The position numbers and the translations under genes are program-made. 35,764 bases of DNA from Leidyana gryllorum EB-2025a. Its lineage: Eukaryota; Protista; Apicomplexa. Where the stretch lies: assembly GCA_048772705.1 (NCBI GenBank), contig JBLWGC010000015.1, positions 1 to 35,764 on the forward strand, in the 5' to 3' direction. Below the pieces are notes generated by a model. It saw only the letters and a program-made list of their open reading frames with translations. It made no database searches and was not told the origin of the DNA. Shown here one piece after another: positions 2,375 through 32,240 of the stretch; the stretch's first letter is position 1; each line of letters begins with the position of its first letter.

Positions 2375-3567
2375 TCAGTTGCTAGAGAATAGAAACTTCG
2401 CAGGTTGCACCACAAAGTAGTTGAATGTCTCCGCCATACGGTCTGCTATGTTTTCACCCAGTTGCTGGAAGCCTAGCTTATTCATACCCTCCAAACCATG
2501 AGATGCAACAGGGACTGGGAAGGTTCCGGGCCGATCCTCAGTGATGACCCATCCCGCATTGCTCGTACCTTCTTCTCTTTGTCTGGCGAGACGTGACAAT
2601 ACCTCATTGCGAGCCACCTCGAACCGTACATTCTCCGAGTACTGGATTTTGGCGCAAGCCACACGTGTTTTGGATGTACAGTGTAACACCACTGACTTTC
2701 CTCTAAGCTCAGACACAGGCGGGGAATAGGGGTCGCGGTTGATGCGGAACAGGAGGTCGTGTCCATTCGTGATCTGGACGGACTGCCGCATCGGTCTATG
2801 ATGGGGCTGAAAAATAGGAGCAGGGGCGATTCCAGTGCCCAGTCCAAAGGTGCTCGAACCTTCTTCTGTAACTTCGCCAAGAGCAGATCTGAGCAGATCG
2901 GCTAATGTCAGATTGGATCGTTGACAGTTGTAGCAGGGCTCGTGAGCTGGTTGACTGGGGGCTTGAGTTTGAGTGTGAGGCAAGGAGATGATCGGATTGG
3001 TGATGTTGAATGGGAGCACCCCATACTTGCCACTCAGATCACCCACCTCACAAGTGTACGGCACGCTTTGATATTGTCCAGGGTCACAGATATAATCCCC
3101 CCAAGCCTGACTGTTTGCGTTGCTGGGATTAGCACAAAGGCAGAATGGGTTCCCACTATCTGGACTGCAAGCAAGTGTCGGGTCGTAGTGGCCTCCGGTG
3201 TGGGGAGCTCCACAATTTTCCGGTCCGAGAGAGAAGAGCCCAAGATCATCATTCCACTGCTGATGGATATGGTACATGAGGCCAGTGCCTGGTCCGGTTC
3301 GGAAACAGGTGGCATCTTCCAAGATGAAGGGTGTCGGGTTCTTTATCCGAACTCGGACTATGTTCCAGTCCTGATAAAAGGCCCACAGCGCATCAATACT
3401 TTCATCGCGAATCTCGGCAATTGCGAAAGGGGCAGTATCTGGGAACAATATGGCATAATCGCACCCGAAAACATACCAGCATGATGGGATGGTACTATAT
3501 TGAAAGGACCTGGGTGAGCATTAGTCAACCCGACAAGAACCACAGCAATACAAGTGGGCGTACGCAT
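2375..3567 (-). CDS. Secreted Cu-only (Cu/Zn-fold) superoxide dismutase-like protein (~384 aa, 2 exons)
   Basis: Signal peptide MRTPTCIAVVLVGLTNA, intron 3439-3476 (GTATGT..CCCAG). Motifs YHIH, C..TGGHYDP, CEVGDLSGKYG and SVVLHC..TRVACAKI match the SOD_Cu fold. Confidence 0.8.
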
Positions 3568-3626
3568 GGCCCGAAACGTGTTTGTAAATGCGCGTCTCCA
3601 ACGTTCCGAGTGTGTGCACACGCTGC

Positions 3627-5441: not shown

Positions 5442-5453
5442 CGAAGCAAAAAA

Positions 5454-12227: not shown

Positions 12228-12253
12228 TACAGACTAGCTAAGCGTTACAATCA

Positions 12254-15574: not shown

Positions 15575-16763
15575 ATGCACGCTGCAGTGAGGAAGTTGTG
15601 GACGAAGGTGTCCAGTCGATCAGCATCGAAGGAGATGACAGCTGGGTCCAGCGGTGACTTTAAGTCAGTCATCTCCAGAGATCGCTTGGCTTTCAAGCGG
15701 ACAATTGGAACAGGTGGGCTCTGGAAGAGAGACTGCCGACTACTTTTGCCCCAGGTTCATTCGGACGGGTCTATATTGCGGATGTCTTGGCTCGGCGGGA
15801 CTCTGATCCCAAGACTGTGGCTGTCAAACGGCTGACAAAGGCAACCCTCATCAAACAACAGCAAGTAGAACATATTCAATCGGAGAAGGCCATATTGCAG
15901 TCATTGCACCACCCATTCTGCGTTCAGTTATTGGGACACTATAAAGACGATGCCTATCTCTATCTGGTTTTGGAGCTCGTCGAGGGTGGGGAATTCTTCA
16001 CTTTCTTGCGACGCAAGCATGTGGTGGACTTTGACGCCGCCCAATTCTACGCTGCACAAGTAACGCTGATCTTCGAGTATTTACACGGACGGAACATCGT
16101 GTATAGGGACTTGAAGCCCGAAAATCTCTTGTTGGATGCCACTGGCTATCTCAAAATGACTGATTTTGGCTTTGCCAAGATCTGTCCTTATCGCACATAT
16201 ACCTTGTGTGGGACTCCTGAGTATATGGCTCCTGAGGTGCTCATCAACAAGGGCCATGGCAAAGCAGTTGATTGGTGGACTCTTGGAATTCTAATTTACG
16301 AGATGGTGTCGGGTTATCCCCCTTTCTATGACGAGGAGGTCATGAAGATCTACGAGAAGATTTTAGCCGGAAAGATCGTCTTCTCCCGCACCTTTGATAG
16401 GTAAGGTCACTCAAGTGTCTGGCTATCTTTGACTTGCTGCCACTTCTGTAGTCGAGCTAAAAGTTTGATAAAGAGACTGCTGGCACACGACTTGACCAGA
16501 CGATACGGAACACTGAAAGGTGGAGCTGAGGACGTCAAACAGCACAAGTTTTTCCACGGATTCGACTTTGTTAGTCTGTATCACCGCCAGACGCCTGCCC
16601 CCGAAGTGCCGGCTAAAAAGGTATGTGACAAGACCTTGAGGTCAGCCACTTTCATGTGTGTCTTTCGTGTGTGCAGGGCAATGAAGCGTTCTCTCATTAT
16701 GCCCCCGAGACGCATGAGGCCGAAAGGGTTATAGGGGCTGACGACCCTTTTTTGGGTTGGTAA
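15575..16763 (+). CDS. PKAc: cAMP-dependent protein kinase catalytic subunit (~346 aa, 4 exons)
   Basis: Introns 15714-15754, 16401-16451 and 16621-16676. Motifs GTGSFGRV, VAVK, YRDLKPEN, DFGFAK, TYTLCGTPEYMAPE, GHGKAVDWW; C-terminus DDPFLGW. Confidence 0.95.
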
Positions 16764-17062
16764 AGTGGAGGGACTGCGCAACACATCATTGAAAAATAGA
16801 TTCTGCGATGGCAGTGCAAGTGGGTCGTCGTCAGGCAGACTGGTGGGAGGCCGACCTGTGTTCATTTGTATGCTTCCCGTTTTCTGTTATTGTGTCACAG
16901 GCCACAGTAACTGATATCGAACCAAGAAATTTGGTGTTCGTCACAGGAGGACTGAGAATGTTTGCTCGTCCAATCGTGCGGACCCCCTTTTCACGCAAGC
17001 GTGTAGGCACGTGCTCAGGGTTTAGTCTAGGGATTGAACGATTGTGCTCTCAATGTCATACT

Positions 17063-18432
17063 TCATTCAAGTCCGTGGGGTTTGCCCGACAAGAAATCGG
17101 TCATGCCTCCGGATGTAGGGTTCTCACCCACATCCACAGTGGCTTCAGGCACCGCATTGGCATCATCGGCTTCCTCGTCAACGACAACTTCTTCGCCCAG
17201 CCATTTGATGCGAACTCCATCCATAAATTGCCCTATTGAGAGTTGTTGATCAGTGTACACGACACGGCACGGCTTGGTGGGTGCTTACCTTCTCTGTAAA
17301 CGCCTCTGCGGCTATAGTACTTCGCTCGACCATTTTCGAGCCCATTTTTCCACTGACCTTCGTATTTGCGTCCATCTGGCCAAGTCATCACACCGAAACC
17401 ACTGCTCTTGCCATTTTCGTAGTGCCCTTGATACACTCTTCCATCAGTGAAGGTGAGTTTACCCTCGCCAGTTTGAGAGCTGCGTTTCCACTGGAATCGA
17501 CGAATTGAGAGAGATTGGCGACAACACATCTTTCATCTCACCTCTCCCTCGTAGACTTTGCCGTCGGCCCAGCGATATACACCATAACCTTCTATTTCGC
17601 CATTTTGGAATTCTCCCTCGTAGATGTCCCCATTGGGCGCGGTTAATCGACCTTGGCCATGCTGACGTCCTTTCCTGCACATCGGTTGTGAGAGGCAGTG
17701 GGGCGGAGGGAATATTACTCACTTGTACTCGCCCACGTACTCCATTCCGCTGCTTTGAATCTCGCGGCCACGGCCTTCTCGGCGGTCCTCCACGAAGGGG
17801 CCAAAGTACTTGGATCCATCAGCAAAGCTGTAAATACCATATCCGCAAGCTTTGCCCTCAACAAAAGCTCCCTCGAGTTTAGAGCCATCTTTGTTGGTGT
17901 AAATACCATATCCTACGGAATTACAGACGTTTCGAGGCAGTGTTCAGGGGGGCGGAAGGAGCAGTCTGGAGAGGGAAGGGGGTTTACCATGTGGTTTGCC
18001 CGCAACAAACTCTCCCAGATAGGAAGAACCATCAGCATAGCTCAGTTTGCCTATGCCGTGCTGCTTGCCGTTTTGCCATTTGCCGCGGTATTTCACCCCT
18101 TTGGGGAGCTCAACTTCATGGTCGGTCTCGTCGAGTTCGAAAACACGGCCGCCAAGTGCGTCCGAAGGGAACTCGAGCTCCATGGCCGAAGGAGCGGCGG
18201 CGGGTTCCGCAGCAGGCGCGGTCTCCACTTCCGCCACAGGCGAGGCGTCCGCTTCACCAGCGGTCTCTGACTTTTTGTCGCTGTACGCAGTGGGAGACTC
18301 GCCAGGGGTAGTGGCATTGTCGCCGGCATCCACTTGCGACCGCGGCTTGGTTTCGGGAGCAGCAGGTTCCTTTCCAACGCCAGCTCCGGTGGGGAGCTTG
18401 ATGTCATCAGGTTTAGAGCTACCGCACCCCAT
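17063..18432 (-). CDS. MORN-repeat protein C (N-terminal MGCGSS acylation motif; 5 exons)
   Basis: About 9 repeats of YxGxWxxGxxHGxGxLxxxDG after removing 4 GT-AG introns. Confidence 0.85.
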
Positions 18433-18500
18433 TCTAGATAAGCGGCGAAAGAACTAGATCGAAATTTGAGTGATCCGCGGGAGACACTAAACTAAATTGT

Positions 18501-19712
18501 TCACACAGGTGGACCATCATCAGTGCGTGCGGGCAAGGGTTCTATTGGGTCACACTTGATTGGTTTGTCCGACAACCACTTGACACGAACGCCTTTCATC
18601 CAGGTCCCTGTTTTATCCCAGTGATCAAACAAACTATCCCAGCCAACAAAAAATCCTCACCTTCACGATACTCGCGGTCACTGGCGTAGTACTTGGCATT
18701 GCCGTCCACTTCACCTTGGTAGAACTGCCCATGAACTTGCACACCATTGGCATACTGCAAAACACCGCGCCCGTTCGGCCGACCTGAGCGGAATTGGCCC
18801 TGGTAAATCTGACCGTTGGGCCACCACTGAATCGCCTTGCCTTCTTGGACGCTCTTAACCCACTGTGTTTGTGCCCCATTTAGTCCAGTACCACCCCAAA
18901 CCAGGTCACTCACCTCGCCTTCGTATTTGCGGCCATCAGCCCACCAGTATGTGCCTTGTCCATCCAGCAATCCTTGTTTGAAGTTGCCAATGTACACGTC
19001 ACCAGCAGCTGTGGTCATCTTTCCCAGACCGGTCTTATGTCCCTCGACATAGTTGCCAATGAACACAACGCCATCAGGTTGGACCTCCTTGCCTCGACCA
19101 TTACGCTTGTCGTCTTTGAAATGTCCCAAGAATCTGCCACAACGACATTTTAGATCCTCTCCAGCGCCGGAGGACTTACACAGTGCCATTCGAAAAGACA
19201 TATTTGCCATAGCCGCAGGCTCGACCATTGACGTACTCCCCCTGATAGGTGGTGCCATCTTTGGCCTTGAAGTATCCCAGACCGTTTGGTTTCCCATCTT
19301 CAAACTCGCCAGTGTATGTCGTGCCATCGGGGTACGTCATCAAGCCAACTCCGTGTTGTTTGGTGGCCTTCCATTCACCCTTATACTTCATACCCTTAGC
19401 GAATTCACGCTCCTCAGCATCCTTGGGAACTTCGATCTTGCGGCCCTTAAAGGGGTCAGCCTCGAAGTCATCGCGGAAGGGATCATCCATGTCTACAGCT
19501 TTAGCCGCCACTGGAGCTGTCTCCTCCTCCTCGTCTTCGTCGTCCTCCTCCTCATCTTCGTCCTCTTCTTCCTCGTCTTCGTCCTCCTCGTCTTCCTCCT
19601 CCTCGTCTTCGTCTTCTTCCTCTTCCTCCTCGGCCTCTTCGTAGTCCTCGTCGTCCTCCTCAGGCTCTGCGCCGTGCAGAGGCTCGTCTATTTTCTTGCG
19701 GTAGATCGGCAT
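18501..19712 (-). CDS. MORN-repeat protein B (poly-Glu/Asp N-terminus; 4 exons)
   Basis: ORFs 19176-19712 and 18596-19327 joined by GT-AG introns. The last exon ends ...DDGPPV with TGA at 18501-18503. About 9 MORN repeats. Confidence 0.85.
19520..19660 (-). repeat. Imperfect GAG/GAC/GAA trinucleotide tract encoding poly-Glu/Asp
   Basis: (TCC/TCG/TCT)n on the + strand, encoding EEDDEDYEEAEEEEEEDEDEEEEDEEDEDEEEEDEDEEEDDEDEEEE in MORN-B. Confidence 0.9.
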
Positions 19713-19864
19713 GGACGAGTTACGTTACACCAAAATGTGTTGACACCACCACGACATGCGGCGGATGGAAGGGTCGTTCGTCGAATGTTGGTATATTGCA
19801 AATCAGAAATCACAGAATATCCAATGTAGCGCTATGCGGCCCGACTTTGACTGACGAGGGGTCC

Positions 19865-21278
19865 TCATTCGAAATCTTTCTTCGAGAAGAAGTCATCCAA
19901 ACCTTGCACGGCAGCCGATGGACGACCTGTGTCGTCAACTTTAGAGGATTCCAGGGCTTTGGCTCTCTCTTCCTCTTTCTTTATCCTCTCGAGCACTTCT
20001 GGATCCTTCATGGGATCGTAGTTGTCCAGAGTGTGCCACTCAGGCTCGAGGAACCGAACCAAATTGCCCTCTTTGAACATAGCTTCTCGGTAATGCATTC
20101 TGTCTTTATAGAACTTGCCGACACCATTCTGGACATTATTCGCCCATTGACCTTCATACTTCCTTCCATCCGGCCACTCCAACAAACCATCGCCCTGGAT
20201 TTTGCCCTTCTCGTAATGCCCGATGTAACGGCGACCATCCGGCCATTGGAATATACCATAGCCTTCTTGATGGCCTCTCACCCACTGATTTGATACTTAT
20301 TGACACACCACTTTGATGACAACTCACATTTCCGTCGTACCAGCGGCCGTCGCCCCACTCGTACTTCCCTTGGCCATGAATCAGACCCTTATCCCAATAA
20401 CCCTTGTAGTGTTCGCCATTGTTCACCCGCAGTTCACCCTGACCATGCTTCAACCCGTCCCTGCTCAAAAGATATCGAAAGCGCAGGAATCAGTAAACTC
20501 ACGCAAAATTGCCCACATAGGTGGCACCAGAGACCTGAATCTCTTTACCACGACCGCTCCGCTTATCTCTCGAGAAATTGCCGTAGTAAATGGACCCATC
20601 TTTGAACTGGTATCGCCCATACCCATCAGCCATCCCGTCGATGAACTCTCCCTGGTACTTGGCCCCGTCCTTCGCAGTATAGGTACCAAGACCTCGAGCT
20701 TTCCCATCTTTGAATTGACCGACATAGGTAGAGCCATCAGGATAAGTGAGTTTTCCCACGCCATGAGGACTGCCATCCCGCCACTGACCTTTATACAGAC
20801 AGTTACGCTCGATCGCGGTCTCCTTGGCATCCGAAGGAACCTCAAACACTTTGCCATGCAGCGGATCTAATCGGAAACCGTCTTCATCAAACTTGCGCTC
20901 CTGGGGCGTCACGGGACTCGCTGCTTCCGCAGCCGCACCCACTTGCGTCATCGGGGGCAACGCGCCCCCCGCCAGTGGCGAAGCTGCTATATTGAGCATG
21001 CTTTTAGAGTCAGCTCGCTTCACTCCAGAACTCAGACTTCGACTCAAACTCCTCCGAGCTGCCTCGGCAACCGGCCCAGTCTGCGCAGAGTAAGCACATG
21101 TGATGACGATCAAGAGGTCCAAATGGTCGCCTACCTTGCCCTTGAGTTCTTTCAAGTCATCCTCGGGATTTTCAGATCTCTTCGGTGGCAGAGTTGGATC
21201 CTCCACGGGCTTCTCCGGAGGATCGAAATTGTTGTCTTGCCACGTGTTAGTGTCTGCTTTCTTGCAGGCGTTACCCAT
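19865..21278 (-). CDS. MORN-repeat protein A (N-terminal MGNAC acylation motif; 4 exons)
   Basis: ORFs 20499-21278, 20154-20468 and 19865-20281 joined by GT-AG introns; 9 full plus 1 partial MORN repeats. Confidence 0.85.
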
Positions 21279-21326: not shown

Positions 21327-22729
21327 TCAAACCTCAATCGACTGTTGTGGCGTTAGGCTCCTAGGCATCAATTCAAATGCTTCGAAAGCCACCTCAGGAT
21401 TGGGTCTGTCATTTCCATCACGCACGAAGAATATTTCTTGCTTCTTGAAGTACCTGTAGGGGCACAGAGCGATGTGTTTGCAGAGACACGTGCGATAGAC
21501 GCGAACGTACCGTCTATCATCTTCGTCAACTAGCACCAAGTTGATGACGTATCGAACCGAAAAGACATTGTGAATGTTCTCATATGTTGGAGTCAAATGC
21601 AGCCCCTTCAGGAACATCCTCACGGGTACCGACTCTCCTGATCGAGAGGCTGGCTGTGGCCGTGAGTCAATGACACCACACTCACCTTTGGCTGGTGTCC
21701 CATCCATGAGCTCAAACTTGGTAACGATAGAGTTCTCGTACAGTACCGGCGCATTGTTTGAGTTGACCACTTGCTGCTGAGTGGAAGGCTCATACCCACC
21801 GTGATGATCGGCCTCCCAAGTCCCGCCGCCATTGAAATAGGGAGTTACTCCGCCTACGGTTTCTTGACGGATGAGGTCCAACTCCATGTGTTTAATGCGC
21901 AGTCTAACTGCACTGAAGTGAACCTGCAATGGACGAAGTGGCTTTGTGGGGAGCGAGTTTGGAGAAGGCATGATTTACCTTTCCTAGGATGCACCCATTC
22001 AGCGAGTGTACACCACTTTTTAGCTGTAACTCAATGTGGAGGCACTCCTCAATACCGACCTGTGGACACAAATTGGATCGGGGATTCCACATCTTACATC
22101 AATGCGAACGGGAGTGGGTGGCACGGGTGGTGCCTTCTGGTTGTGGACGACAAAATCGACTTCGCGAAATATGGTTCTATTATAGGGACGAATGAGTGTC
22201 AAGCGAAGGAAGTATCGCAACCGCACGTTGGTGCCGTAATAAGTTTCATGCGGCATATCGCCAGCCTTAAACTTCCATTCATAAGTACGGGGATCCTGCA
22301 GAATACCTTCCCATACCATTTCCACACTCTTCTTGCAGCCTGATCCCACCTGGAGGTTCCAGGTCTTTACTCATACTGAGGAAGTCGCTCTCCTTGGGAC
22401 CCCTCCCGGACTTCATCTCGATCCGTCCAATCATTTCTATCTTAAGCCCGTGATGCTCAATGGCCTTGCCCGGTTTGAACTGCACAGCCGCGACTCCGGA
22501 TATATCATCACCATCCTGAGGATCGTTGTGTGGCGAGGCGGTGGTATATCTGGCCTCACTTGGAACACCAGACCTTTGTCTGAGGGCCTGTCATATGAGA
22601 ATGGAGCTCGAATGCCACCAGGCTTCTTATGTACAGCTAGATCCACTGTCACAGTCGGCTGCCCTCCAAATAAAGATGCCAGCTGTGGGTGGAGTAACAC
22701 GAGTGCCTGATATCATTTTTACTCACCAT
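21327..22729 (-). CDS. VPS26: Retromer subunit VPS26 (8 exons)
   Basis: ATG immediately followed by an intron (ATG|gtgagt). Motifs IEHHGLKIEMIGRIE, DLEPPG, ETYYGTNVRLRYFLR, VGIEECLHIE, IKHMELDLIRQET, KFELMDGTPAKGESVPVRMFL, FSVRYVINLVLVDEDDRRYFKKQEI. Confidence 0.95.
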
Positions 22730-22762
22730 ACTGTGTCAAAGAATAAGTGGTGAATTTTGGAC

Positions 22763-23792
22763 ATGGTGGCCATCCATCTCGACCCCCTAATATGTACCTG
22801 GATGTTCTTCCCCGTGGTGGGATTGACATTGGGAACCATATTACTGCGACAAGGGATGACTATGCTGTTCAAGAAACCTGGAGAGGTCGCTGGGGGCAAT
22901 CCTATGATGCCGGGAAAAGCTCCGACTCTGGCTGAGGTTCACATTGGGTGAGATTTGACTGTGTTATCTCCTAGAGTGGTGGCTCAGGAATGTGACTACT
23001 GCCTCGAAACTCACCCGAGCCGCTTCGGTGATGATGACTCCGGCCAGTCTGCTGGCGCGAAGACGCTATTGGGTCGGCAAGGAGGAAGACGGCAAACTTT
23101 GTGACCCTCCTGAGATTCCTCAGCAACCTCTGCAGGCAATGATGAGTGCTGGTAAGTCAGGTGCTTTCTTTTGTAACGCGTTGTGCCACTACAATTTGCT
23201 GCCGCAGACCCATCCCAAATGGCCGGTTCCATGATGCACCACATGTCGTCATTGGTGTTGAACGGTGGGTTGGCTTATCTCATTAGCTACCTGTTCTCGG
23301 AGTCGGTTGTGGGCAAGACCCCCTTCCCGCTCACCGACACGTTCAAGCCCCTGCTACAACGCGGAATGGACGTGCCAGACCTCGACGCCTCGTACATCTC
23401 GGCTCTGTCGTGGTACGTTCTGATATTGTTCTGCAGTTCAAGCTTCACCTTCTTGCTGGGGAAATTGTTTGGCGGCAGTGAGTGTTTGTTGCCCGATCGG
23501 TCCCTCGTACGATGCCTTTTCTGTAGTGGGGAAGATGAACATGTTGGCAGCGATAGATCCTATGATGGGGATGGCAATGGGCGGTGGGGGTCAGGGGGCA
23601 CCGCTCCCCGGTCTTTTCGGGGGAGAGCCCACAAAGCAGTTTGGGCAGGAGGCAGATTACTGGAAAATCCTGGTAAGCCAGAGAAGGATGAGAGATTGTC
23701 TCGGCGGTTGAATTCAATTGTGTCTGCAGCCTCAAAGACCTTTCCTCCCAGAAGCCGAAAAACGAGCTCTGGCTGTGTTAAGTAGATCATGA
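22763..23792 (+). CDS. EMC3: ER membrane protein complex subunit 3 (~275 aa, 5 exons)
   Basis: Introns 22948-22987, 23152-23207, 23478-23526 and 23673-23729. Motifs LDPLICTWMFFPVV, KTPFPLTDTFKPLLQRG..DLDASYISALSWY, KQFGQEADYWKI; stop TGA at 23790-23792. Confidence 0.9.
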
Positions 23793-26700
23793 GCATCAAG
23801 AATGTTCTTATATGTTGTTGTCTGTGGCTAGTTAACGCTGTGGAACTGTACACATATGATCCAATATGTTTCCCGACTGAATTGAACACATCAGTGTCGC
23901 AGAATACCGTCATCAATGACGAGGATTCCGATCACCTCAAGATCCCTGTCCTCACGGAATTAGCAGCTCTGGACCAAGACTCCGCATTCCAGGTTCTCAG
24001 CTACCGCGAATTCAAGACAATGACTGAGGACCCCACAGACCGCACCGGCTATTTGGTCCAACTCACGAGCACTGGGAACCACCCAGTCTTGATAGTCCAG
24101 GGCCACCGTCAAAGCCTACTCTCGCTCGAAAAGCTGATGAGCAGCATTACTGCGATTCAAACTTCCAGACTACGCTTCCTAACGCAAATGGACCTCCAGG
24201 ACCGCTTTGTACAGTGCTCTGGGACTGTTGGACCCATATACCTCGCTGCCTTTGAGGAACAGCCAACAGACGTCAGTATGACTGTCTTCCTGAACCAATT
24301 CACTTTCGTCAGGAGATCGCTGGAGCACATCAGTCGGACTTTGCAACGACAGATTGTGAGAGACTCACCCCCGGGCTCGAACCCCAACCCTCGACCACGT
24401 ATTGTGCTCGTCGGCTACTCGATGGGAGGGTTTGTGGCTGCGAATGTGGCCGTTCACTGGCTCGTCGATATGGTTAGAAGCTGTACCACCACCACGGGAG
24501 GGATTCTGATGCCCGTCGACTGTGATGCCGGGTTTGTGGAGCGTTGGCCGTTTGACATTGTCACTACCTTCACCGTGTCTTCGCCGCTCCTCCAAGCTCC
24601 CAAGGCTTTGGGTTTGACCTGGGAAGCCATATATCAGGACGTTGCCCAACACATGATGGAGGTTGAAAGAAAGCTGAGAGTCGATTGGTCGCATACCTTC
24701 CCATTTTTCATCCACTTCTGTGGCGGCCAGAGTGATCCGCATGTTCACTGCGCTGTGTCTGGTTTCTCGTCACCCTATGACTATTTGGGGGGTAAATTCT
24801 CTCTACAGTTTCCAATGCTCGACATATTGGGCATCACTATAGTGGACACCGAGAGCGGTACATATGAACCTCTCCAAGATGTGGACTTCTTACATCGCAT
24901 ATTCTCGCCTGCTATCCTCTATGCTGCGCAGTTGGACATGTTCAAGTCATATTTGGGTATTGACTGGCAGTCGCGATTCGCCCGCACGTCGGATCTGAAC
25001 TATGTGATATATGGGCTGCTCTTCAACATACTGCACGACAGAATAGCCGAACCGGTCAGTGTGGCTCAAGGCGAACGCAGCTACAACTTTGCCTACATGA
25101 TGAAGCGATGGAAGCTGGATGGGGATATGTCTTTGGAAGAGACCTATCGTCAGCAGGTCAAAATCATCAAGACTCTTTTCCCTTCGCGGGGTATCGCATC
25201 CATCAACCCGGATGACTACAACCCTCTTGAGATCTTAGCCCGCGTATTTCGACTGCAGCCGGATTTGATGAGGAAAGAAGTTATCTGGGGCCCGAAGATT
25301 CCCTTCGTACCCTCAAGTCACCTAAGCCAAAGCCTTCCCCCGCTGAATGTTTCAGATACCACTCTGGAGCACCTCAGTGTGGACATTGATCTCTCGAGCG
25401 GGACCTTCTTCACTCTCGCTAACGTTCCAGAGAGAATCATCTCTTCGCCTCACGCCATACAGGTTCTGAGGATCCCGGTGGAAGCGTACAGCGACAGCAC
25501 GCGGCGTCTACTCGGTGGCGGTCAGAGAGCTGTCATGACGGTTGGGGCTTTGGCCGACCCGGAAGTGGATAGTTTGCTCATGTATTGGGTCTACGGAGAC
25601 TTCACGACCATTCAGAGTCGACGAGACTGCAAACTATTGCGCATGGAGGCTTTGGAAAGCTACTCTAACACTGTTGACTTTCCGAGCGGCAGACAAGAGC
25701 AGCTCCGGATGTTCTTGGGATTCTTCCCACTCCCGATAGGCTCGGCCGAGCTGTCCCAGAATTCGAACCACTCCGTCGGCTTAGCCTTCCAAACCCTCAC
25801 CACCAGTCCACTGTACATTTCCCTGAGATTGTCGGTGGGAGAGTATGCTGCTCGTGACTGGATCAGCCGAGCGTTCAATCCTTGGGGCTACTGGCCTGTC
25901 ATGACAGTGACAGCTGCCACTCGTTGGCGCGTACCCACGTTCGGGCAAGATGTGGAGACCCTCGAGGACAATCGATGGCAGCCTTTGCGACTCCATTCAC
26001 ACAATTTCGCATTTATAATCAACTACGAAGGGAGAGTGTCTCTCCCTTCCGCGACCTCGTGTGTCTGGCAGTGGTCCGACGCAGAGAGCCCTCTGATCCG
26101 CAAGTGTTCGACTCAGTTCCGTCCGAGGCGAGAGACCGAAGGTCGGGGAGAATGGACTCTTTACACGAGAGAGCGCTGGGCTACGGGAGTGCAGTCTCTC
26201 CAAGAGATCCAACAACTGCGAATGGGGCCCGCTCGATTGGACCAGAGGAGTTACGGACCCAAGCCGCTGCCAGAGTATGACAACTCCACTGTGGGTCAGC
26301 CTTTGGACACGACGCAGCGGATTCAAATGTACGAAAGCGCCGCGAAACGCGAGTTGATCACCACGATTGACCACCTGATCAAAGGGCAATGGCTGCCACT
26401 GGTCACTTACAGTATGTTATTCACTCTGTTTCTGCTCGGATTCAATCGGGTGGCGATGGCTTATTGCTCCCGACAGACCTTCGTGCCCACCCATACGGCG
26501 CTGGTAGCTCCCTCACGAGATGCTAAGCACATCATCAAAGGTTCTCTGACGGCCTTGGCTTATGTCCTGTTCCCTCCACGGAAACCCGGAATGCTCAGTC
26601 TGTTGGCGCAGACATGGCGACGTATGTGGCCAGCCGTCATAGTTTTGATTATCTGGGCGATCCTGCTGACGGTTTTGGGGAGTGAGTCAAAGTTTTGGTG

Positions 26701-27932
26701 TTTGACGTTGAGATCCCCCATTCCTGTCAGATTTGCATAGGAGTTCAACGAATCTGGAGGCTGCTGCAATGGAGTACGAAGTTCGAGATCTGTTCCAGGA
26801 TCTACCTGGGATCGGTGTTTTTGGGATGGTGCTCTCGATCTGCTCTCTCACGTACATTGTCATATGCTTCGGCGGCTTGGCGGGTACAATGGTGGGTTTT
26901 CTGTGCTGGAATTGGATCAGCTTTGTCGGATTGTGTGGCAAGTTGTCGACTTGGAAATATCCACGGAGAGGGACGTGGATGTGGATCGGTTGCACTCTTG
27001 TGTTGAGCATCCTGAGTTTGACCTTTTGCCTCTTTGTACTCTTCCTCATGCCGACGTTCGCCATGATGTTCAGTACAGCGGGCATTTTGATTTTGCTTAT
27101 GGTGCATAATCTCCTCAAGATATCTCATTCTTCTCGTGGAGAAGCAGACCCGGCGCTGCCTGAGATACGGGAGCTCGTAACCCCTCGTCTTTGGACGTTG
27201 CAACGGACCTCCATCCTGCTGGAGGCCAGCTTCTTGATCGGTTTGTGCATATTTGGATCACTGCATCTTTGGTCCCAACTGCACATTGGGTGGCCCGCCA
27301 AGTACGGATACTCCAGCTTCATCTCCGCCCTCTGGGCCACTGGGCCTCGCCTGATCTATCGCAAGGATTTCTCCACCTATCTGCTGACTCTTGGGGCGCT
27401 GATGGATCTGTACATCGTCCCCTTTTCTGCCGCTGCCCTCGTCATTGGACACGGATGCCACTACGCCCGACGACGAGAGGTCAAATTCCAGATACGACGA
27501 CTGGAAAGAGCTCGCAGAAAAACCGTCTCCGCCCTGCAGTTCATGGAAGCTGCTCGCGGAACCCACATACTGGAGGAACACGGAGACCTCTTCAACAGCA
27601 TGGCCACTCCAGACGGCGATCAACCAGTCGCTGAGATCACCACCACAGCCGTGAGCGAGCTGTCGAGCGATCAGACCTTCGCACTGCGCTTGAGCAAGGC
27701 AGCCTTGGGAGCGGATCGAGACCGTAATGTTTGTTCCACCGTTGGTGTTCTACTTTGCCTGACTTCTGTGGGGGGGCTTCTTGCCGTAAGGTAAGCAGCA
27801 AATCGACCCGCCACCAACACTTGATCCACATATTTTTTCAGGATGACGTCCCTTAATATGGTACTCGTCCCCTCTGTTATCGGTTTGCTGCTGATGACAG
27901 GAATGGAGATTTACATGACCATCATGCGCTAA
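23789..27932 (+). CDS. PGAP1/Bst1-like alpha/beta-hydrolase multi-pass membrane protein, copy 1 (~1347 aa, 3 exons)
   Basis: Signal peptide; PVLIVQG, IVLVGYSMGG (GxSxG), TVSSP, CGGQSDPHV; C-terminal multi-TM region. Introns 26682-26730 and 27791-27841. The GPI inositol-deacylase assignment is by motif and architecture only. Confidence 0.7.
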
Positions 27933-27963
27933 TTTAGCTAGCCTTAGTTAGTACCCGAAAAGA

Positions 27964-30900
27964 ATGATGTGGCGATCATTGATTATTTGTATAACTTATG
28001 TATTTGCACTACCCGAGCGCTATCCCGTACAACACGGTGACCCTCAATGCTTTGTGTATACAGAGATCGCGGCACACCATCGTCTCCCCGGGCTAGAAGA
28101 AGTTGAACCCGGAGATGCCGACGAAGAAGGAGGAGGGCCGCCACCCCGCTATGTACCTCGTACACCTGAACCTGTACAGGCTGCAGACCTCTTGAGTGCA
28201 TTCAACTTGACATGGGCCGAACTTCCTCCAGAGTTGCAACAGCTAGCATTATCGAATATAACCTCCCCCTTATTCCCAGCATATGCAGACGAAATAGCAA
28301 GTGAGTATCTGGGATCCCGAAGACACCTGGTGGAGCCGCTAGTCAAACTCACTAAGCCTGAGTTTGCTGATCGGACAGAAAGCGAGTCCCGACGCTGGCC
28401 CGGCTCGCTCGTTCAATTAACATACACCGGACGACAACCATTATTGCTTGTCCATGGCGATCGCAAGACGATGGCAAATTTGGAACGTTGGGTAACCTCC
28501 ATCCGAGCTATCGCACACGCGCGAATGGAGTTCGAACGACTGGCCGGTTTGCGCGATAGATATGCGGGCTGTGAAAGTACCATTGGGCCGATCTTCCTGG
28601 CTGCCTTTGATGGTCAACCAGTGCTGCAGAGCATCAACCTGTATTTGAATCAGGTGGCTGCCACTATGGACTCCCTGGTTTACATAGCCGACATTGTGAA
28701 AGACGCTAGTCACCGGCATGGTCATGTCGCGCCTCGTCCGCGCATTCTTATCGCTGGCTACAACATGGGTGGTACTGTAGCGTTCCATATAGGGACAGAT
28801 TTTCTTCTCGATTTATCCCGGCATTGTGATGTATATGAGGATGGCATGTTGATACCAAAAGCTTGTGATGTCGAGTTTCAGGACAAATGGCCATTCGACA
28901 TTATTGGTGTAATGACCGTGTCGAGCCCGATCCGTCAACACCCTTATCCACTGAATCTGGCGTGGGGTGGTCTATTTACCGATCTGATCAACAAAGTGGA
29001 ATCAGCTCTGGATCATCTTAGTGTGCATTGGGGCCGAATGATTCCTTTTTTCCTCCACTTCTGTGGCGGTCAAAGTGATGCCCAGCTACAATGTATTATC
29101 TCTGACTTGGCCGGCATCCGAGAAGCTGGACTTGTGACCAAAGCATCAATGTCATTCCCCGCTGTGGATCTGATGAACTCTCCCACCACCAATTTGGAGG
29201 AGTTTGAGATTCTGAAAGACGTCAATTTTCTGCATCGTGTCCTCTCCCCGCTGATGCTGTTCGTCAGCCGGGTGAGTGTTCTCCAATACTATCTCGGAGC
29301 CGACTGGAGGACGAGGCTGACCAGACCTCAAGATGTATACGCAGCTGTGGTCCCATTGGTATTCTATCTGATGCACAAGAACATCGCCGAGCCGATCTCC
29401 AAAGTTCAGGGTGAAAGGAGCTATAATATCGCTCATTTTATCAACAGAATGCGGCTTTGGAATGCCACTACACCTGAAGAAGCATACGAAGACTGTCTGC
29501 GTTTCGTACTGGTGATGCTTCGGTCACAAGCTCTGTTGGTGATTGACGTCGAAACCAACAGCCCACTGGATTTGTTGGTCAAACTGTTCCGTACAATGCC
29601 AGCGCAGATCAGTCGATCATATATGTGGGGATCATACACTCCATTCGCTAATACTGGACTTCTCACTGCCGACGAAAGTGGCACCGTTCGAGTCGATCCT
29701 GGTCGTCTCGACAGTCGCTCTATTTCCGTTGACATGTCAGGAGCCACGTTGGTTCATATAAATGATCCGGTCGAGACCCTCCATATGGATGTACACAGTA
29801 TTGTCATTCTGGAGCTTGAGGTCACTGAGTACAGTCAAACAATTACGCTCGAAATGCTGGTGGATCCGGAAGTAGAATCAGTGGTGGTGAGGGAACGAAG
29901 AGTATTTGCTGACACACAGTGTGTTTCGTAGATGTACTATGTGTATGGCTCAGCGGATGACAATGGACCCGATCTGTCCCAGATGAAGGTTCTGGCACTG
30001 GTAGACAACGCCGAATGCCCCAACACGGTGCAGTTCCCGAGTCGCAGAATTGAACAGCTAAGGCTGCTGACGAGCATTGTCCCGGTGCCAAGTAGACTGC
30101 CCAACGCCACAGCACTTGTGGGCATAGCTCTGACGGTTATGACTCCCTCCGACATTGTCATACTGGGCAATTCTAACCCAAGTCTCCACCTGACCGCTGA
30201 TTGGATAATGCGGAGTCTCCCATCCTGGGGCCCCTGGGACATCATTGACGTTGCGGCCACTACCGAATGGCTGATCCCGCTGCACGGAGCTTCGGTTGAG
30301 GATCTCGAGGACGGAGGGTGGGAGCTTCTTAGAATTCACTCTCACAATTTTGGGTTTCTGATGAATGCTGCCGGAAGGGCAGTGGTGCCAGCGGCCAACC
30401 AATGCAAGTGGATATGGGATATTGCCACCGATCCTCTTCTTCGGAGATGTGAAATGAGATTTGCGCCCCGAAGATCCACATATCGGCGCCAGGAATGGAA
30501 AATGTACTCCAAGTTGACTTGGCGTCAGCACGAGAGGGGTAGGTTGGTTCCAGACTACGTACCTGAAGCAGGTGCTAACGCAAGTGCAACGGCGACCCAA
30601 CCCCTTCAAATGACAAACGATGTGACTCTGGCGGCTGTCTCCATTCAAAACTACTTTCAACTGAAGAGAGACACGCTGGTTCGGTACCACGGACTCACAG
30701 TCCTCTCCTTCATCGCATGTACACACATCTTGTTGCTGGGATTCAATCTGGTAGCGTATGCGTATGCCACTCGAGGAACGGGGGTCAGTATGAAATTTGT
30801 ATCGTTGGAGGGAGATCTCAACGTGAATCGCATAATGCGGCGCTTTGTAACCTGTTTGAGCTACACACTCTTCCCGCCTCGGAAACCTGTCGCCCACAGT

Positions 30901-32240
30901 CTCGTTGCCACCATTTGGCGCCGAACGTGGCCGGCACTCGCCGTTCTCACAGTCTCCTTGGCATCAATCCTAGTCTGCAACAGTAAGTTGATCAATAGTC
31001 GTGGCTGCCTTCACCACTCTCACGTCTCTTCTTCCCAGCCCGCCCCCTTCGCGAGCCCAGCGGAAGGTACTTGGGTACTCGAGATTTGTTCGAAGACTTC
31101 AATATTATCTCTGCCACGCTTCTCATTTGGTGTCTTGTGGCGGGGTCACTGGTTGGAATCAGCACAGTTATCGGCCTTTTCGCGTTGCTCATAACTGGTA
31201 CCATTCAGGGGTGGAAGTGGGCGCAAGCCAACTTGGGCTACTGCATACCACATGTCTCGTTGGGTAGTCTACGTGAAACAACCCGTGTTGCGCGTTACAT
31301 TATCGCTGCTCTGATCTGTATAATACTCACAATACTGTGGCCTTCGGTATTACTGATGATCGCTGATGTTTTGTTGGCGGGACTGCTCACACTGTACTTC
31401 CTCACGGCCCCGCTGCCCACCGACTCAGCTTTGCCCAGCATGGCTTTGGTTGAGAAACGGGTATGGACTCTGGAAGGCACTATGATATTACTAATGCTAA
31501 TGATTGCGGCCGATTTGACTGCATACATCGGCTTCTACGTTGTGAACCAGATGAGTTTGGGAATAAGGCCGAGATTTGGCTACCGCAATATGTGGACAGC
31601 TGCCTGGGCCGAGAGCGCTGGCTTACTGGGCCATCGAGGAGTGGTTTCGACCCGGTATCGATGTGCAGTTTTCATTGATTTGTATCTGGCTACAGTACCC
31701 ACCTTCGTATTGGCCTTGTTGGTGACGAGGTGGGTCAGGAGACAGTTCAGTGGATCAGCCAGAGATCTCCAAATCGGTCTTGAAACTAAACTCTCGAGAT
31801 TGTCAGACGCTTTGGATCTGGACGCTCAGCAAGCGCTCGTCGAAACTACGACGGGCCGCGATACATCCATTGAAGGCCCCATGCACTCACAGAGCGAGGG
31901 CTCGATCCTGGCAGGACTGACGAGTCCCGAAAAGCTTGTTAGCTCAGACTCGTCCGTGGAGAATGAGGGGTCGATGCAGAACCCAGCTGGAAGCCTTGTG
32001 ATCCCCGATGAGACGGAATTGACCCGACGAGAGGCCTCGCTCGAAACTTTGGTGGTGTTGGCCCAGAAGAATGCCCATGAACGACATCAATCAGCCATAT
32101 TCGGAGGTCTGGTGGCAGTCATCGGCATGGCGAGCCCCTACTTTATTCGAGCAACGGGACTGATGTACACTGAGATGTCACTCATTGTCGCCGTCCTGGT
32201 GATGATCGTTCACAGAGTCGTTTTTGAATGGGTGGGATGA
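27964..32240 (+). CDS. PGAP1-like multi-pass membrane protein, copy 2, with nucleophile Ser replaced by Asn (~1391 aa, 3 exons)
   Basis: Colinear paralogue of copy 1 (WPFDI, PFFxHFCGGQSD, QGERSYN, RxHSHNF, LFPPRKP), with ILIAGYNMGG. Introns 29887-29931 and 30983-31038 join three ORFs in frame. Confidence 0.7.

Follow-up and report, generated by a model that had tools for sequence, protein, structure and literature searches.

How do two spliced nuclear genes come to share the letters of a stop codon and a start codon, and does such an arrangement point to coupled translation of the bacterial kind? The question is raised by a locus in the window (the whole stretch of DNA analysed here, 35,764 nt, from a gregarine assembly of 15.5 Mb in 237 contigs), where the gene for the ER membrane insertase subunit EMC3 runs directly into a gene for a PGAP1-like protein. 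On the forward strand, positions 23784-23792 read AGATC-ATG-A, with the PGAP1-like ATG at 23789-23791 and the EMC3 TGA at 23790-23792, the coordinates that an earlier, sequence-only reading of this DNA had given. The 4-nt ATGA overlap between the two genes (23789-23792, + strand, a spacing of -4) is real.

Gene models on either side of the overlap

The EMC3 gene was modelled as five exons on the forward strand that together encode 275 aa without an internal stop. Exon 1 (22763-22947, ATG at 22763) was defined by the open reading frame and by blastp to the orthologue P0119, and exon 2 (22988-23151) by the reading frame and the P0119 alignment. Exon 3 (23208-23477) carries the PF01956 core (Pfam EMC3_TMCO1, E 5e-17), and its best matches are gregarine EMC3 proteins (57-69%), one of them from Gregarina sp. 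Poly 1. The best matches of the PKA gene are apicomplexan, and the DNA most likely comes from a eugregarine. Exons 4 (23527-23672) and 5 (23730-23792, 20 codons plus TGA) were placed by orthologue alignment. Introns 1 (22948-22987, 40 nt, phase 2) and 2 (23152-23207, 56 nt) are supported by splice-site scores and by matched positions in the relative L011, and intron 3 (23478-23526, 49 nt) by splice-site scores and a similar position in L010 and L011. Intron 4 (23673-23729, 57 nt, GTAAGC...TGCAG) has no counterpart in L010 or L011 and was placed by its splice-site scores; among 73 predicted introns of 37-64 nt, its donor ranks at the 38th percentile and its acceptor at the 93rd, as scored with PWMs that include this locus's own sites. 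Homology searches were queried with single exons or ORFs, and joined spliced models were used only for translation, hydropathy and one local comparison with four orthologues.

In local blastp, P0119 covered residues 3-275 of the EMC3 model at 48.6% and ended at exactly the same last residue. Four gregarine EMC3 orthologues have C-termini that align with the exon 5 peptide. The PF01956 match, the end-to-end orthology and a C-terminus of orthologous length identify the gene as EMC3, which is single-copy in the genome; the sole other PF01956 match, on contig C230, is probably TMCO1. The stop at 23790-23792 is secure because the C-terminus encoded by exon 5 is orthologous, the intron 4 acceptor is strong and EMC3 is single-copy. 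The earlier proposal that EMC3 ends at this TGA after intron 23673-23729, with its usual C-terminal length, agrees with the C-termini of the orthologues. Retention of intron 4 (stop at 23711) was rejected, as the conserved C-terminus is then lost, and so were the alternative acceptors at 23737, 23751 and 23754, which are out of frame and lose it as well.

The downstream gene, PGAP1-like A (23789-27932, + strand), encodes 1347 aa in three exons (23789-26681, 26731-27790 and 27842-27932), and its introns were confirmed in the relative L015. A signal peptide of 17 aa ending in V-N-A (23789-23839, + strand) is predicted from hydropathy and from a match to the paralogue, PGAP1-like B. The first Met is followed by Met at residue 78, and a hydrophobic signal-peptide core (hydropathy 2.5, against 2.8 in the paralogue) lies behind Met1 and not behind Met78. 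Moreover, the N-termini of A and B align in register. The start at 23789 is therefore well supported, and a start at Met78, with no signal peptide, was rejected. Hydropathy and alignment alike bear out the claim that this Met is needed for the signal peptide, that the paralogue has one at the same place and that the next Met comes about 78 codons later.

PGAP1-like A carries GYSMGG at residue 209 and about eight C-terminal TM segments. This G-x-S-x-G-G motif with a multi-TM C-terminus is that of a PGAP1/Bst1-like hydrolase, and a lumenal hydrolase role is predicted; GPI inositol-deacylase activity and a place in the ER would be expected of a true member of this family. The Pfam PGAP1 match of A itself (E 8.8e-5) fell below the cut-off, while that of its homologue on L016 passed. 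Scanning with HMMER returned seven relatives, of which the named ones come from gregarines; a word-based homologue search with a PGAP1-like exon gave no match, and a PDB sequence search gave no meaningful match to a solved structure.

PGAP1-like B (27964-32240, + strand; introns 29887-29931 and 30983-31038) encodes 1391 aa. As the sequence-only reading had it, B begins 31 nt behind A, whose stop ends at 27932. The spacer (27933-27963, + strand) holds TAGCT..CTTAGTTAGT..AAAAGA elements that are also found in a 56-nt spacer of L015. In B the motif is GYNMGG, the nucleophile Ser being replaced by Asn, and the B stop codon also reads ATGA, opening a dead-end ORF of 27 aa. A TAG-ATG at 29929-29934 was considered as a second junction and rejected, as it lies in intron 29887-29931.

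Frequency of overlaps expected from composition and packing

The overlap was set against the composition and packing of a sample of ~98 kb, comprising the window and pieces of contigs C1 and C2. Gene-finder runs merged neighbouring genes, and genes and gaps were therefore curated by hand; the null model is based on these ~98 kb of hand curation. The sample contains no ATGA overlap between real genes other than that of EMC3 and PGAP1-like A. ATGA nevertheless stands at 7 of the 35 other curated stops (20%), where the ORFs that it opens are dead ends of 3-27 aa. In this list of 35 the MORN2 stop is off by one base and the entry at C2 32854 is an intron (true stop 31511); neither reads ATGA either way. 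ATG occupies 1.5% of positions downstream of stops, and ATGA at the stop itself is about 13 times as frequent as that chance. It is frequent there because TGA serves at about two thirds of the stops. At an offset of -1, ATG occurs at about 5% of stops that have no close neighbour. The argument that ATGA is a hallmark of coupling loses its force in a genome where a fifth of curated stops already read that way.

Spacers are short as well. Six of the 18 other tandem pairs in the ~98 kb are separated by 60 nt or less, and tandem spacings include -4, 12, 31 and 37 nt in the window's genome and -1, 3, 25, 38 and 56 nt in relatives. If spacers of all lengths down to zero are taken to be about equally common, some 7% of tandem pairs (95% range 2-17%) should stand at -4, and the probability of at least one ATGA overlap in ~12 tandem pairs is ~0.6, both from a rough null on a small hand-curated sample. 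On the same assumption, some 60-600 ATGA overlaps are expected genome-wide; composition predicts a -4:-1 ratio of 2.7-3.8. In neutral simulations (PMC3887535), overlaps of 4 nt are the most frequent, followed by those of 1 nt. Because ATGA is common at stops and a third of tandem gaps are so short, one overlap per window is to be expected, and the count of -4/-1 overlaps, one in ~98 kb, is within the compositional expectation. On this rough null, the EMC3/PGAP1-like overlap is not above chance for this genome.

Neighbours of EMC3 and PGAP1-like genes in relatives

The downstream neighbour of EMC3 is a convergent gene in L010 and a convergent GST gene in L011. In L012/L013 an MFS transporter gene lies 38 nt behind EMC3, and the two genes share one contig in two runs of one relative, SRR10829749/50. 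That single EMC3-MFS contig fits a bicistronic mRNA equally well. In the L011 species (run SRR31860986) the PGAP1-like gene is found on a separate contig, L016, where it starts 3 nt (12 nt if the second Met is used) behind the stop of an RFC small-subunit gene. The RFC start, which is backed by WVEKYRP after a 35-nt intron, is itself overlapped as TAATG by the stop of a gene that we take to be CorA/MRS2-like by its GMN motif; Pfam on a short piece of this gene did not confirm the identity. A -4 overlap of called genes at 3524-3527 of L016 was discarded as an intron-derived calling artefact, the real gap to PKA being ~25 nt.

As three relatives have other genes after EMC3 and the PGAP1-like gene lies elsewhere in the L011 species, the pairing is lineage-specific and its partners are not conserved. 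The check proposed earlier, conservation in sister species, thus went against the pair: EMC3-PGAP1-like adjacency is absent in the relatives compared. The same comparison contradicts the suggestion that an ER insertase subunit is functionally paired with ER proteins, since the neighbour of EMC3 differs in three relatives and the PGAP1-like gene of L016 follows RFC. Because an independent TAATG overlap was confirmed in L016, stop/start overlaps are a gregarine trait and not a property of the EMC3/PGAP1-like pair. The earlier suspicion of an unusual operon-like or overlap-like feature in this genome holds for the lineage as a whole.

Probable explanation: tight gene packing and overlapping transcription units

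In this lineage the distance between neighbouring genes falls as far as zero, for tandem as for head-to-head pairs. EMC3 stands head-to-head with VPS26, identified by a Pfam Vps26 match (E 1.4e-13) in exon 22098-22319, whose start codon (22727-22729, - strand) is directly followed by an intron. The arrangement is conserved: the distance between the two ATGs is 33 nt at this locus, 28 nt in L012 and 13 nt in L011. Contig C2 holds a further divergent pair, whose start codons are separated by 27 nt. Coupled translation is inapplicable to such pairs, and head-to-head gaps of 13-33 nt are too short for two promoters and their leaders; transcription must therefore start within or against neighbouring genes. 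Spacers too short for promoters and UTRs, those of head-to-head pairs included, place this genome among the compact ones. The L012 contig, which is probably RNA (intronless EMC3, transcript-like ends), reaches over the VPS26 ATG into the first intron of VPS26.

We consider that the locus is probably explained by extreme gene packing with separate overlapping transcripts, and not by bacterial-style coupled translation. A rearrangement would have put the PGAP1-like gene behind EMC3, after which the spacer would have been lost; a TGA preceded by A would have offered a ready-made ATG, leaving the exact ATGA geometry as a by-product of composition. PGAP1-like A would have a transcription start of its own within EMC3 intron 4 or exon 5, intron 4 being a candidate site for the internal promoter. 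The last ATG upstream of 23789 lies in intron 4, 101 nt before it, and exon 5 provides an AUG-free leader region; an AUG-free leader of up to ~100 nt could be scanned normally from the cap. The EMC3 mRNA would end within the PGAP1-like coding region and may sometimes read through, as in Cryptosporidium. Counting against an internal start site, no promoter motif was identified upstream of 23789. Also unfavourable, in C. parvum (PMC11761812), are the few inter-cistron regions that are chromatin-accessible and the internal monocistrons that may lack promoters of their own.

Alternative explanations

Ribosomes that end EMC3 on a bicistronic or polycistronic mRNA might instead restart at the overlapping AUG, and the near-zero gaps of gregarines might be kept for that purpose. 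We regard this as unlikely. A TURBS-type element is a UGGGA motif complementary to 18S rRNA, located shortly upstream of the stop. No such UGGGA was found near the EMC3 stop: in the spliced mRNA there is none within 640 nt of the PGAP1-like AUG, and the nearest TGGGA lies 642 nt upstream. The motif sought is the calicivirus type, and a variant may match the 18S rRNA of this organism. The geometry is ideal for reinitiation, with stop and start within 20 nt, but a eukaryotic ribosome ordinarily depends on a dedicated element to restart behind a long ORF (PMC10275272). Yeast can nevertheless be made to reinitiate with no cis-elements (PMC11952965). Further in its favour, the three-gene run on L016, in another gregarine, shows a TAATG followed by a 3-nt gap, and in both species the PGAP1-like gene sits close behind an upstream neighbour (-4, +3) that is not the same gene in the two. 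In the related C. parvum, 201 polycistrons join genes with unrelated functions (PMC11761812). The frequency of overlaps, however, shows no sign of an excess over composition, and the partners are neither conserved nor subunits of one complex, unlike those of prokaryotic overlaps (PMC10666635). It is likewise doubtful that eugregarines routinely translate the downstream cistrons of spliced polycistronic mRNAs by reinitiation without a viral-type element, near-zero and negative spacers being a lineage-wide coupling device. If true, this would break the rule by which restarting after a long ORF requires a special element in eukaryotes.

It is quite improbable that a polycistronic precursor is trans-spliced, or cleaved and recapped, into EMC3 or PGAP1-like mRNA; because the ORFs overlap, one precursor cannot yield both. 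Co-oriented runs with tiny gaps are consistent with such processing, and the strong intron 4 acceptor at 23729, 60 nt upstream of the ATG, has the position expected of a trans-splice acceptor. That acceptor, however, is fully accounted for by cis-splicing, and precursor processing cannot account for the head-to-head gaps. Moreover, no spliced leader was detected in C. parvum (PMC11761812).

The separate start might not exist at all if alternative splicing joined EMC3 in frame to the hydrolase, through an intron at 23673-23785 or one at 23782-23831, the latter removing both stop and start. The gene finder proposed both in-frame joins; the intron at 23782-23831 is, at 50 nt, of modal length, and a protein joined through 23673-23785 would have a coherent topology with the signal peptide as its fourth membrane segment. 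Acceptor 23785, donor 23782 (GTAGAT) and acceptor 23831 nonetheless all score below every one of the 73 confident introns, the first intron (113 nt) is outside the 37-64 nt range, and the second would delete the signal peptide. Furthermore, EMC3 exists in one copy, whose last residue is the orthologous one, and the paralogue and homologues of the hydrolase are free-standing with N-termini of their own. We hold such a fusion to be very improbable.

Least probable is a bicistronic mRNA read by internal entry at a hypothetical IRES, or by leaky scanning of the green-algal type, which is effectively refuted because the spliced EMC3 ORF contains 24 AUGs ahead of the PGAP1-like AUG, and in algae one extra AUG suppresses ORF2 (PMC11291117).

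Meaning of the locus and comparison with known systems

Extreme packing with separate transcripts would place promoters and poly(A) signals within coding exons. Gene finders will fuse such neighbours, as the one used here did. No description of stop/start overlaps in gregarines was found in the literature searched, of which coverage is incomplete, and an intron-rich apicomplexan lineage whose genes abut or overlap through their stop and start codons is apparently undescribed for gregarines. The EMC3/PGAP1-like locus is a single case among many, without a particular functional logic; it is the lineage-wide packing trait that merits dedicated study. Such loci are natural tests of whether and how translation reaches an ORF that follows a long, AUG-rich one, a question raised by the polycistrons of C. 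parvum.

Among known systems, viral TURBS reinitiation (caliciviruses, influenza B; PMC10275272) resembles the locus in having an AUGA overlap after a long ORF read by a eukaryotic ribosome, whereas the EMC3 stop is without a nearby UGGGA and a single mRNA is hypothetical. Prokaryotic -4/-1 overlaps (PMC6728339, PMC10666635) have the identical ATGA geometry, with -4 commoner than -1. In prokaryotes, however, spacings of -4 and -1 greatly outnumber any other and occur preferentially between genes for subunits of complexes, while here gaps are mostly positive, partners are shuffled and the genes are spliced. The bicistrons of green algae (PMC7896298, PMC11291117) are nuclear genes, as here, and some of their loci have an overlapping stop and start; they depend on leaky scanning past an AUG-poor first ORF, in contrast to EMC3 with its 24 AUGs.

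Cryptosporidium parvum (PMC11761812) is an apicomplexan relative with co-oriented, unrelated genes, as at this locus, and with no trans-splicing. Its polycistrons were demonstrated by long reads, whereas the gregarine locus is known here from genome sequence, and stop/start overlaps are not described in the passages cited. By analogy, the gregarine locus may share the coexisting polycistronic and monocistronic RNAs of C. parvum (PMC11761812, PMC12246861). In the microsporidia Encephalitozoon cuniculi and Antonospora locustae (PMC2803860), as here, spacers are too short for signals, control elements are displaced into neighbouring genes and the partners are unrelated. Overlaps of coding sequences are rare in microsporidia (9 are left in E. 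cuniculi after re-annotation) and their genes are intron-poor, in contrast to the intron-rich 15.5 Mb considered here. By analogy, the nearest match to the working of the locus would seem to be the microsporidia, with their displaced signals and overlapping transcripts (PMC2803860).

Gene spacing and order around EMC3

The head-to-head arrangement of VPS26 and EMC3 is kept in the window and in two relatives, with 33 nt between the start codons in the window (22727-22765), 13 nt in L011 (2560-2578), the EMC3 contig of the SRR31860986 gregarine, and 28 nt in L012 (7-40), from Logan SRR10829749. An intron donor directly follows the VPS26 ATG in the window and in L012. EMC3 lacks introns in L012 and lies 38 nt from an MFS transporter gene on this single contig (L012:1-2554). 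The same EMC3-MFS contig was recovered from SRR10829750 (L013), with transcript-like ends in both runs, and we regard it as a candidate transcript pair, either bicistronic or overlapping.

The synteny of window 15575-21278 with L016:1-3380, a second contig of the SRR31860986 gregarine, comprises PKA convergent with tandem MORN-repeat genes. Unlike this block, the neighbours of EMC3 and the PGAP1-like gene are shuffled between the two. A run of three genes, CorA/MRS2-like, RFC small-subunit and PGAP1-like, was also observed on L016 (Logan SRR31860986). The CorA/MRS2-like stop and the RFC start share bases in a TAATG (L016:6737-6741), and the PGAP1-like ATG follows the RFC stop by 3 nt (L016:7962-7970).

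Within the window, 12 nt (5442-5453) separate the end of a NOT4-like RING/RRM gene (8389 to 5454, minus strand, identified by eye) from a pantothenate kinase (Fumble) gene. A secreted protein (2375-3570, minus) carries a CEVGDLSGKYG motif and had no Pfam match at E 0.01; it resembles copper-only or Cu/Zn superoxide dismutase-like proteins. Elsewhere in this Leidyana genome, two V-ATPase proteolipid (subunit c) genes with similar intron patterns lie in tandem on the minus strand (contig C2, 43710-45238).

The PGAP1-like paralogues and their spacer

Intron positions differ between PGAP1-like A (23789-27932, plus) and B (27964-32240, plus). Because GYNMGG in B replaces the GYSMGG of A, B is probably a pseudo-enzyme. 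The spacer between them (27933-27963) contains TAGCT..CTTAGTTAGT..AAAAGA. This element is retained in the paralogue spacer of another relative (L015, before 2144), yet the coding DNA of L015 is only about 64% identical to the window. It is a candidate promoter or 3'-processing element. TAGCTA, the Plasmodium AP2-O site, also occurs in the window upstream of 8389, upstream of 8520 and in the convergent gap at 12228-12253.
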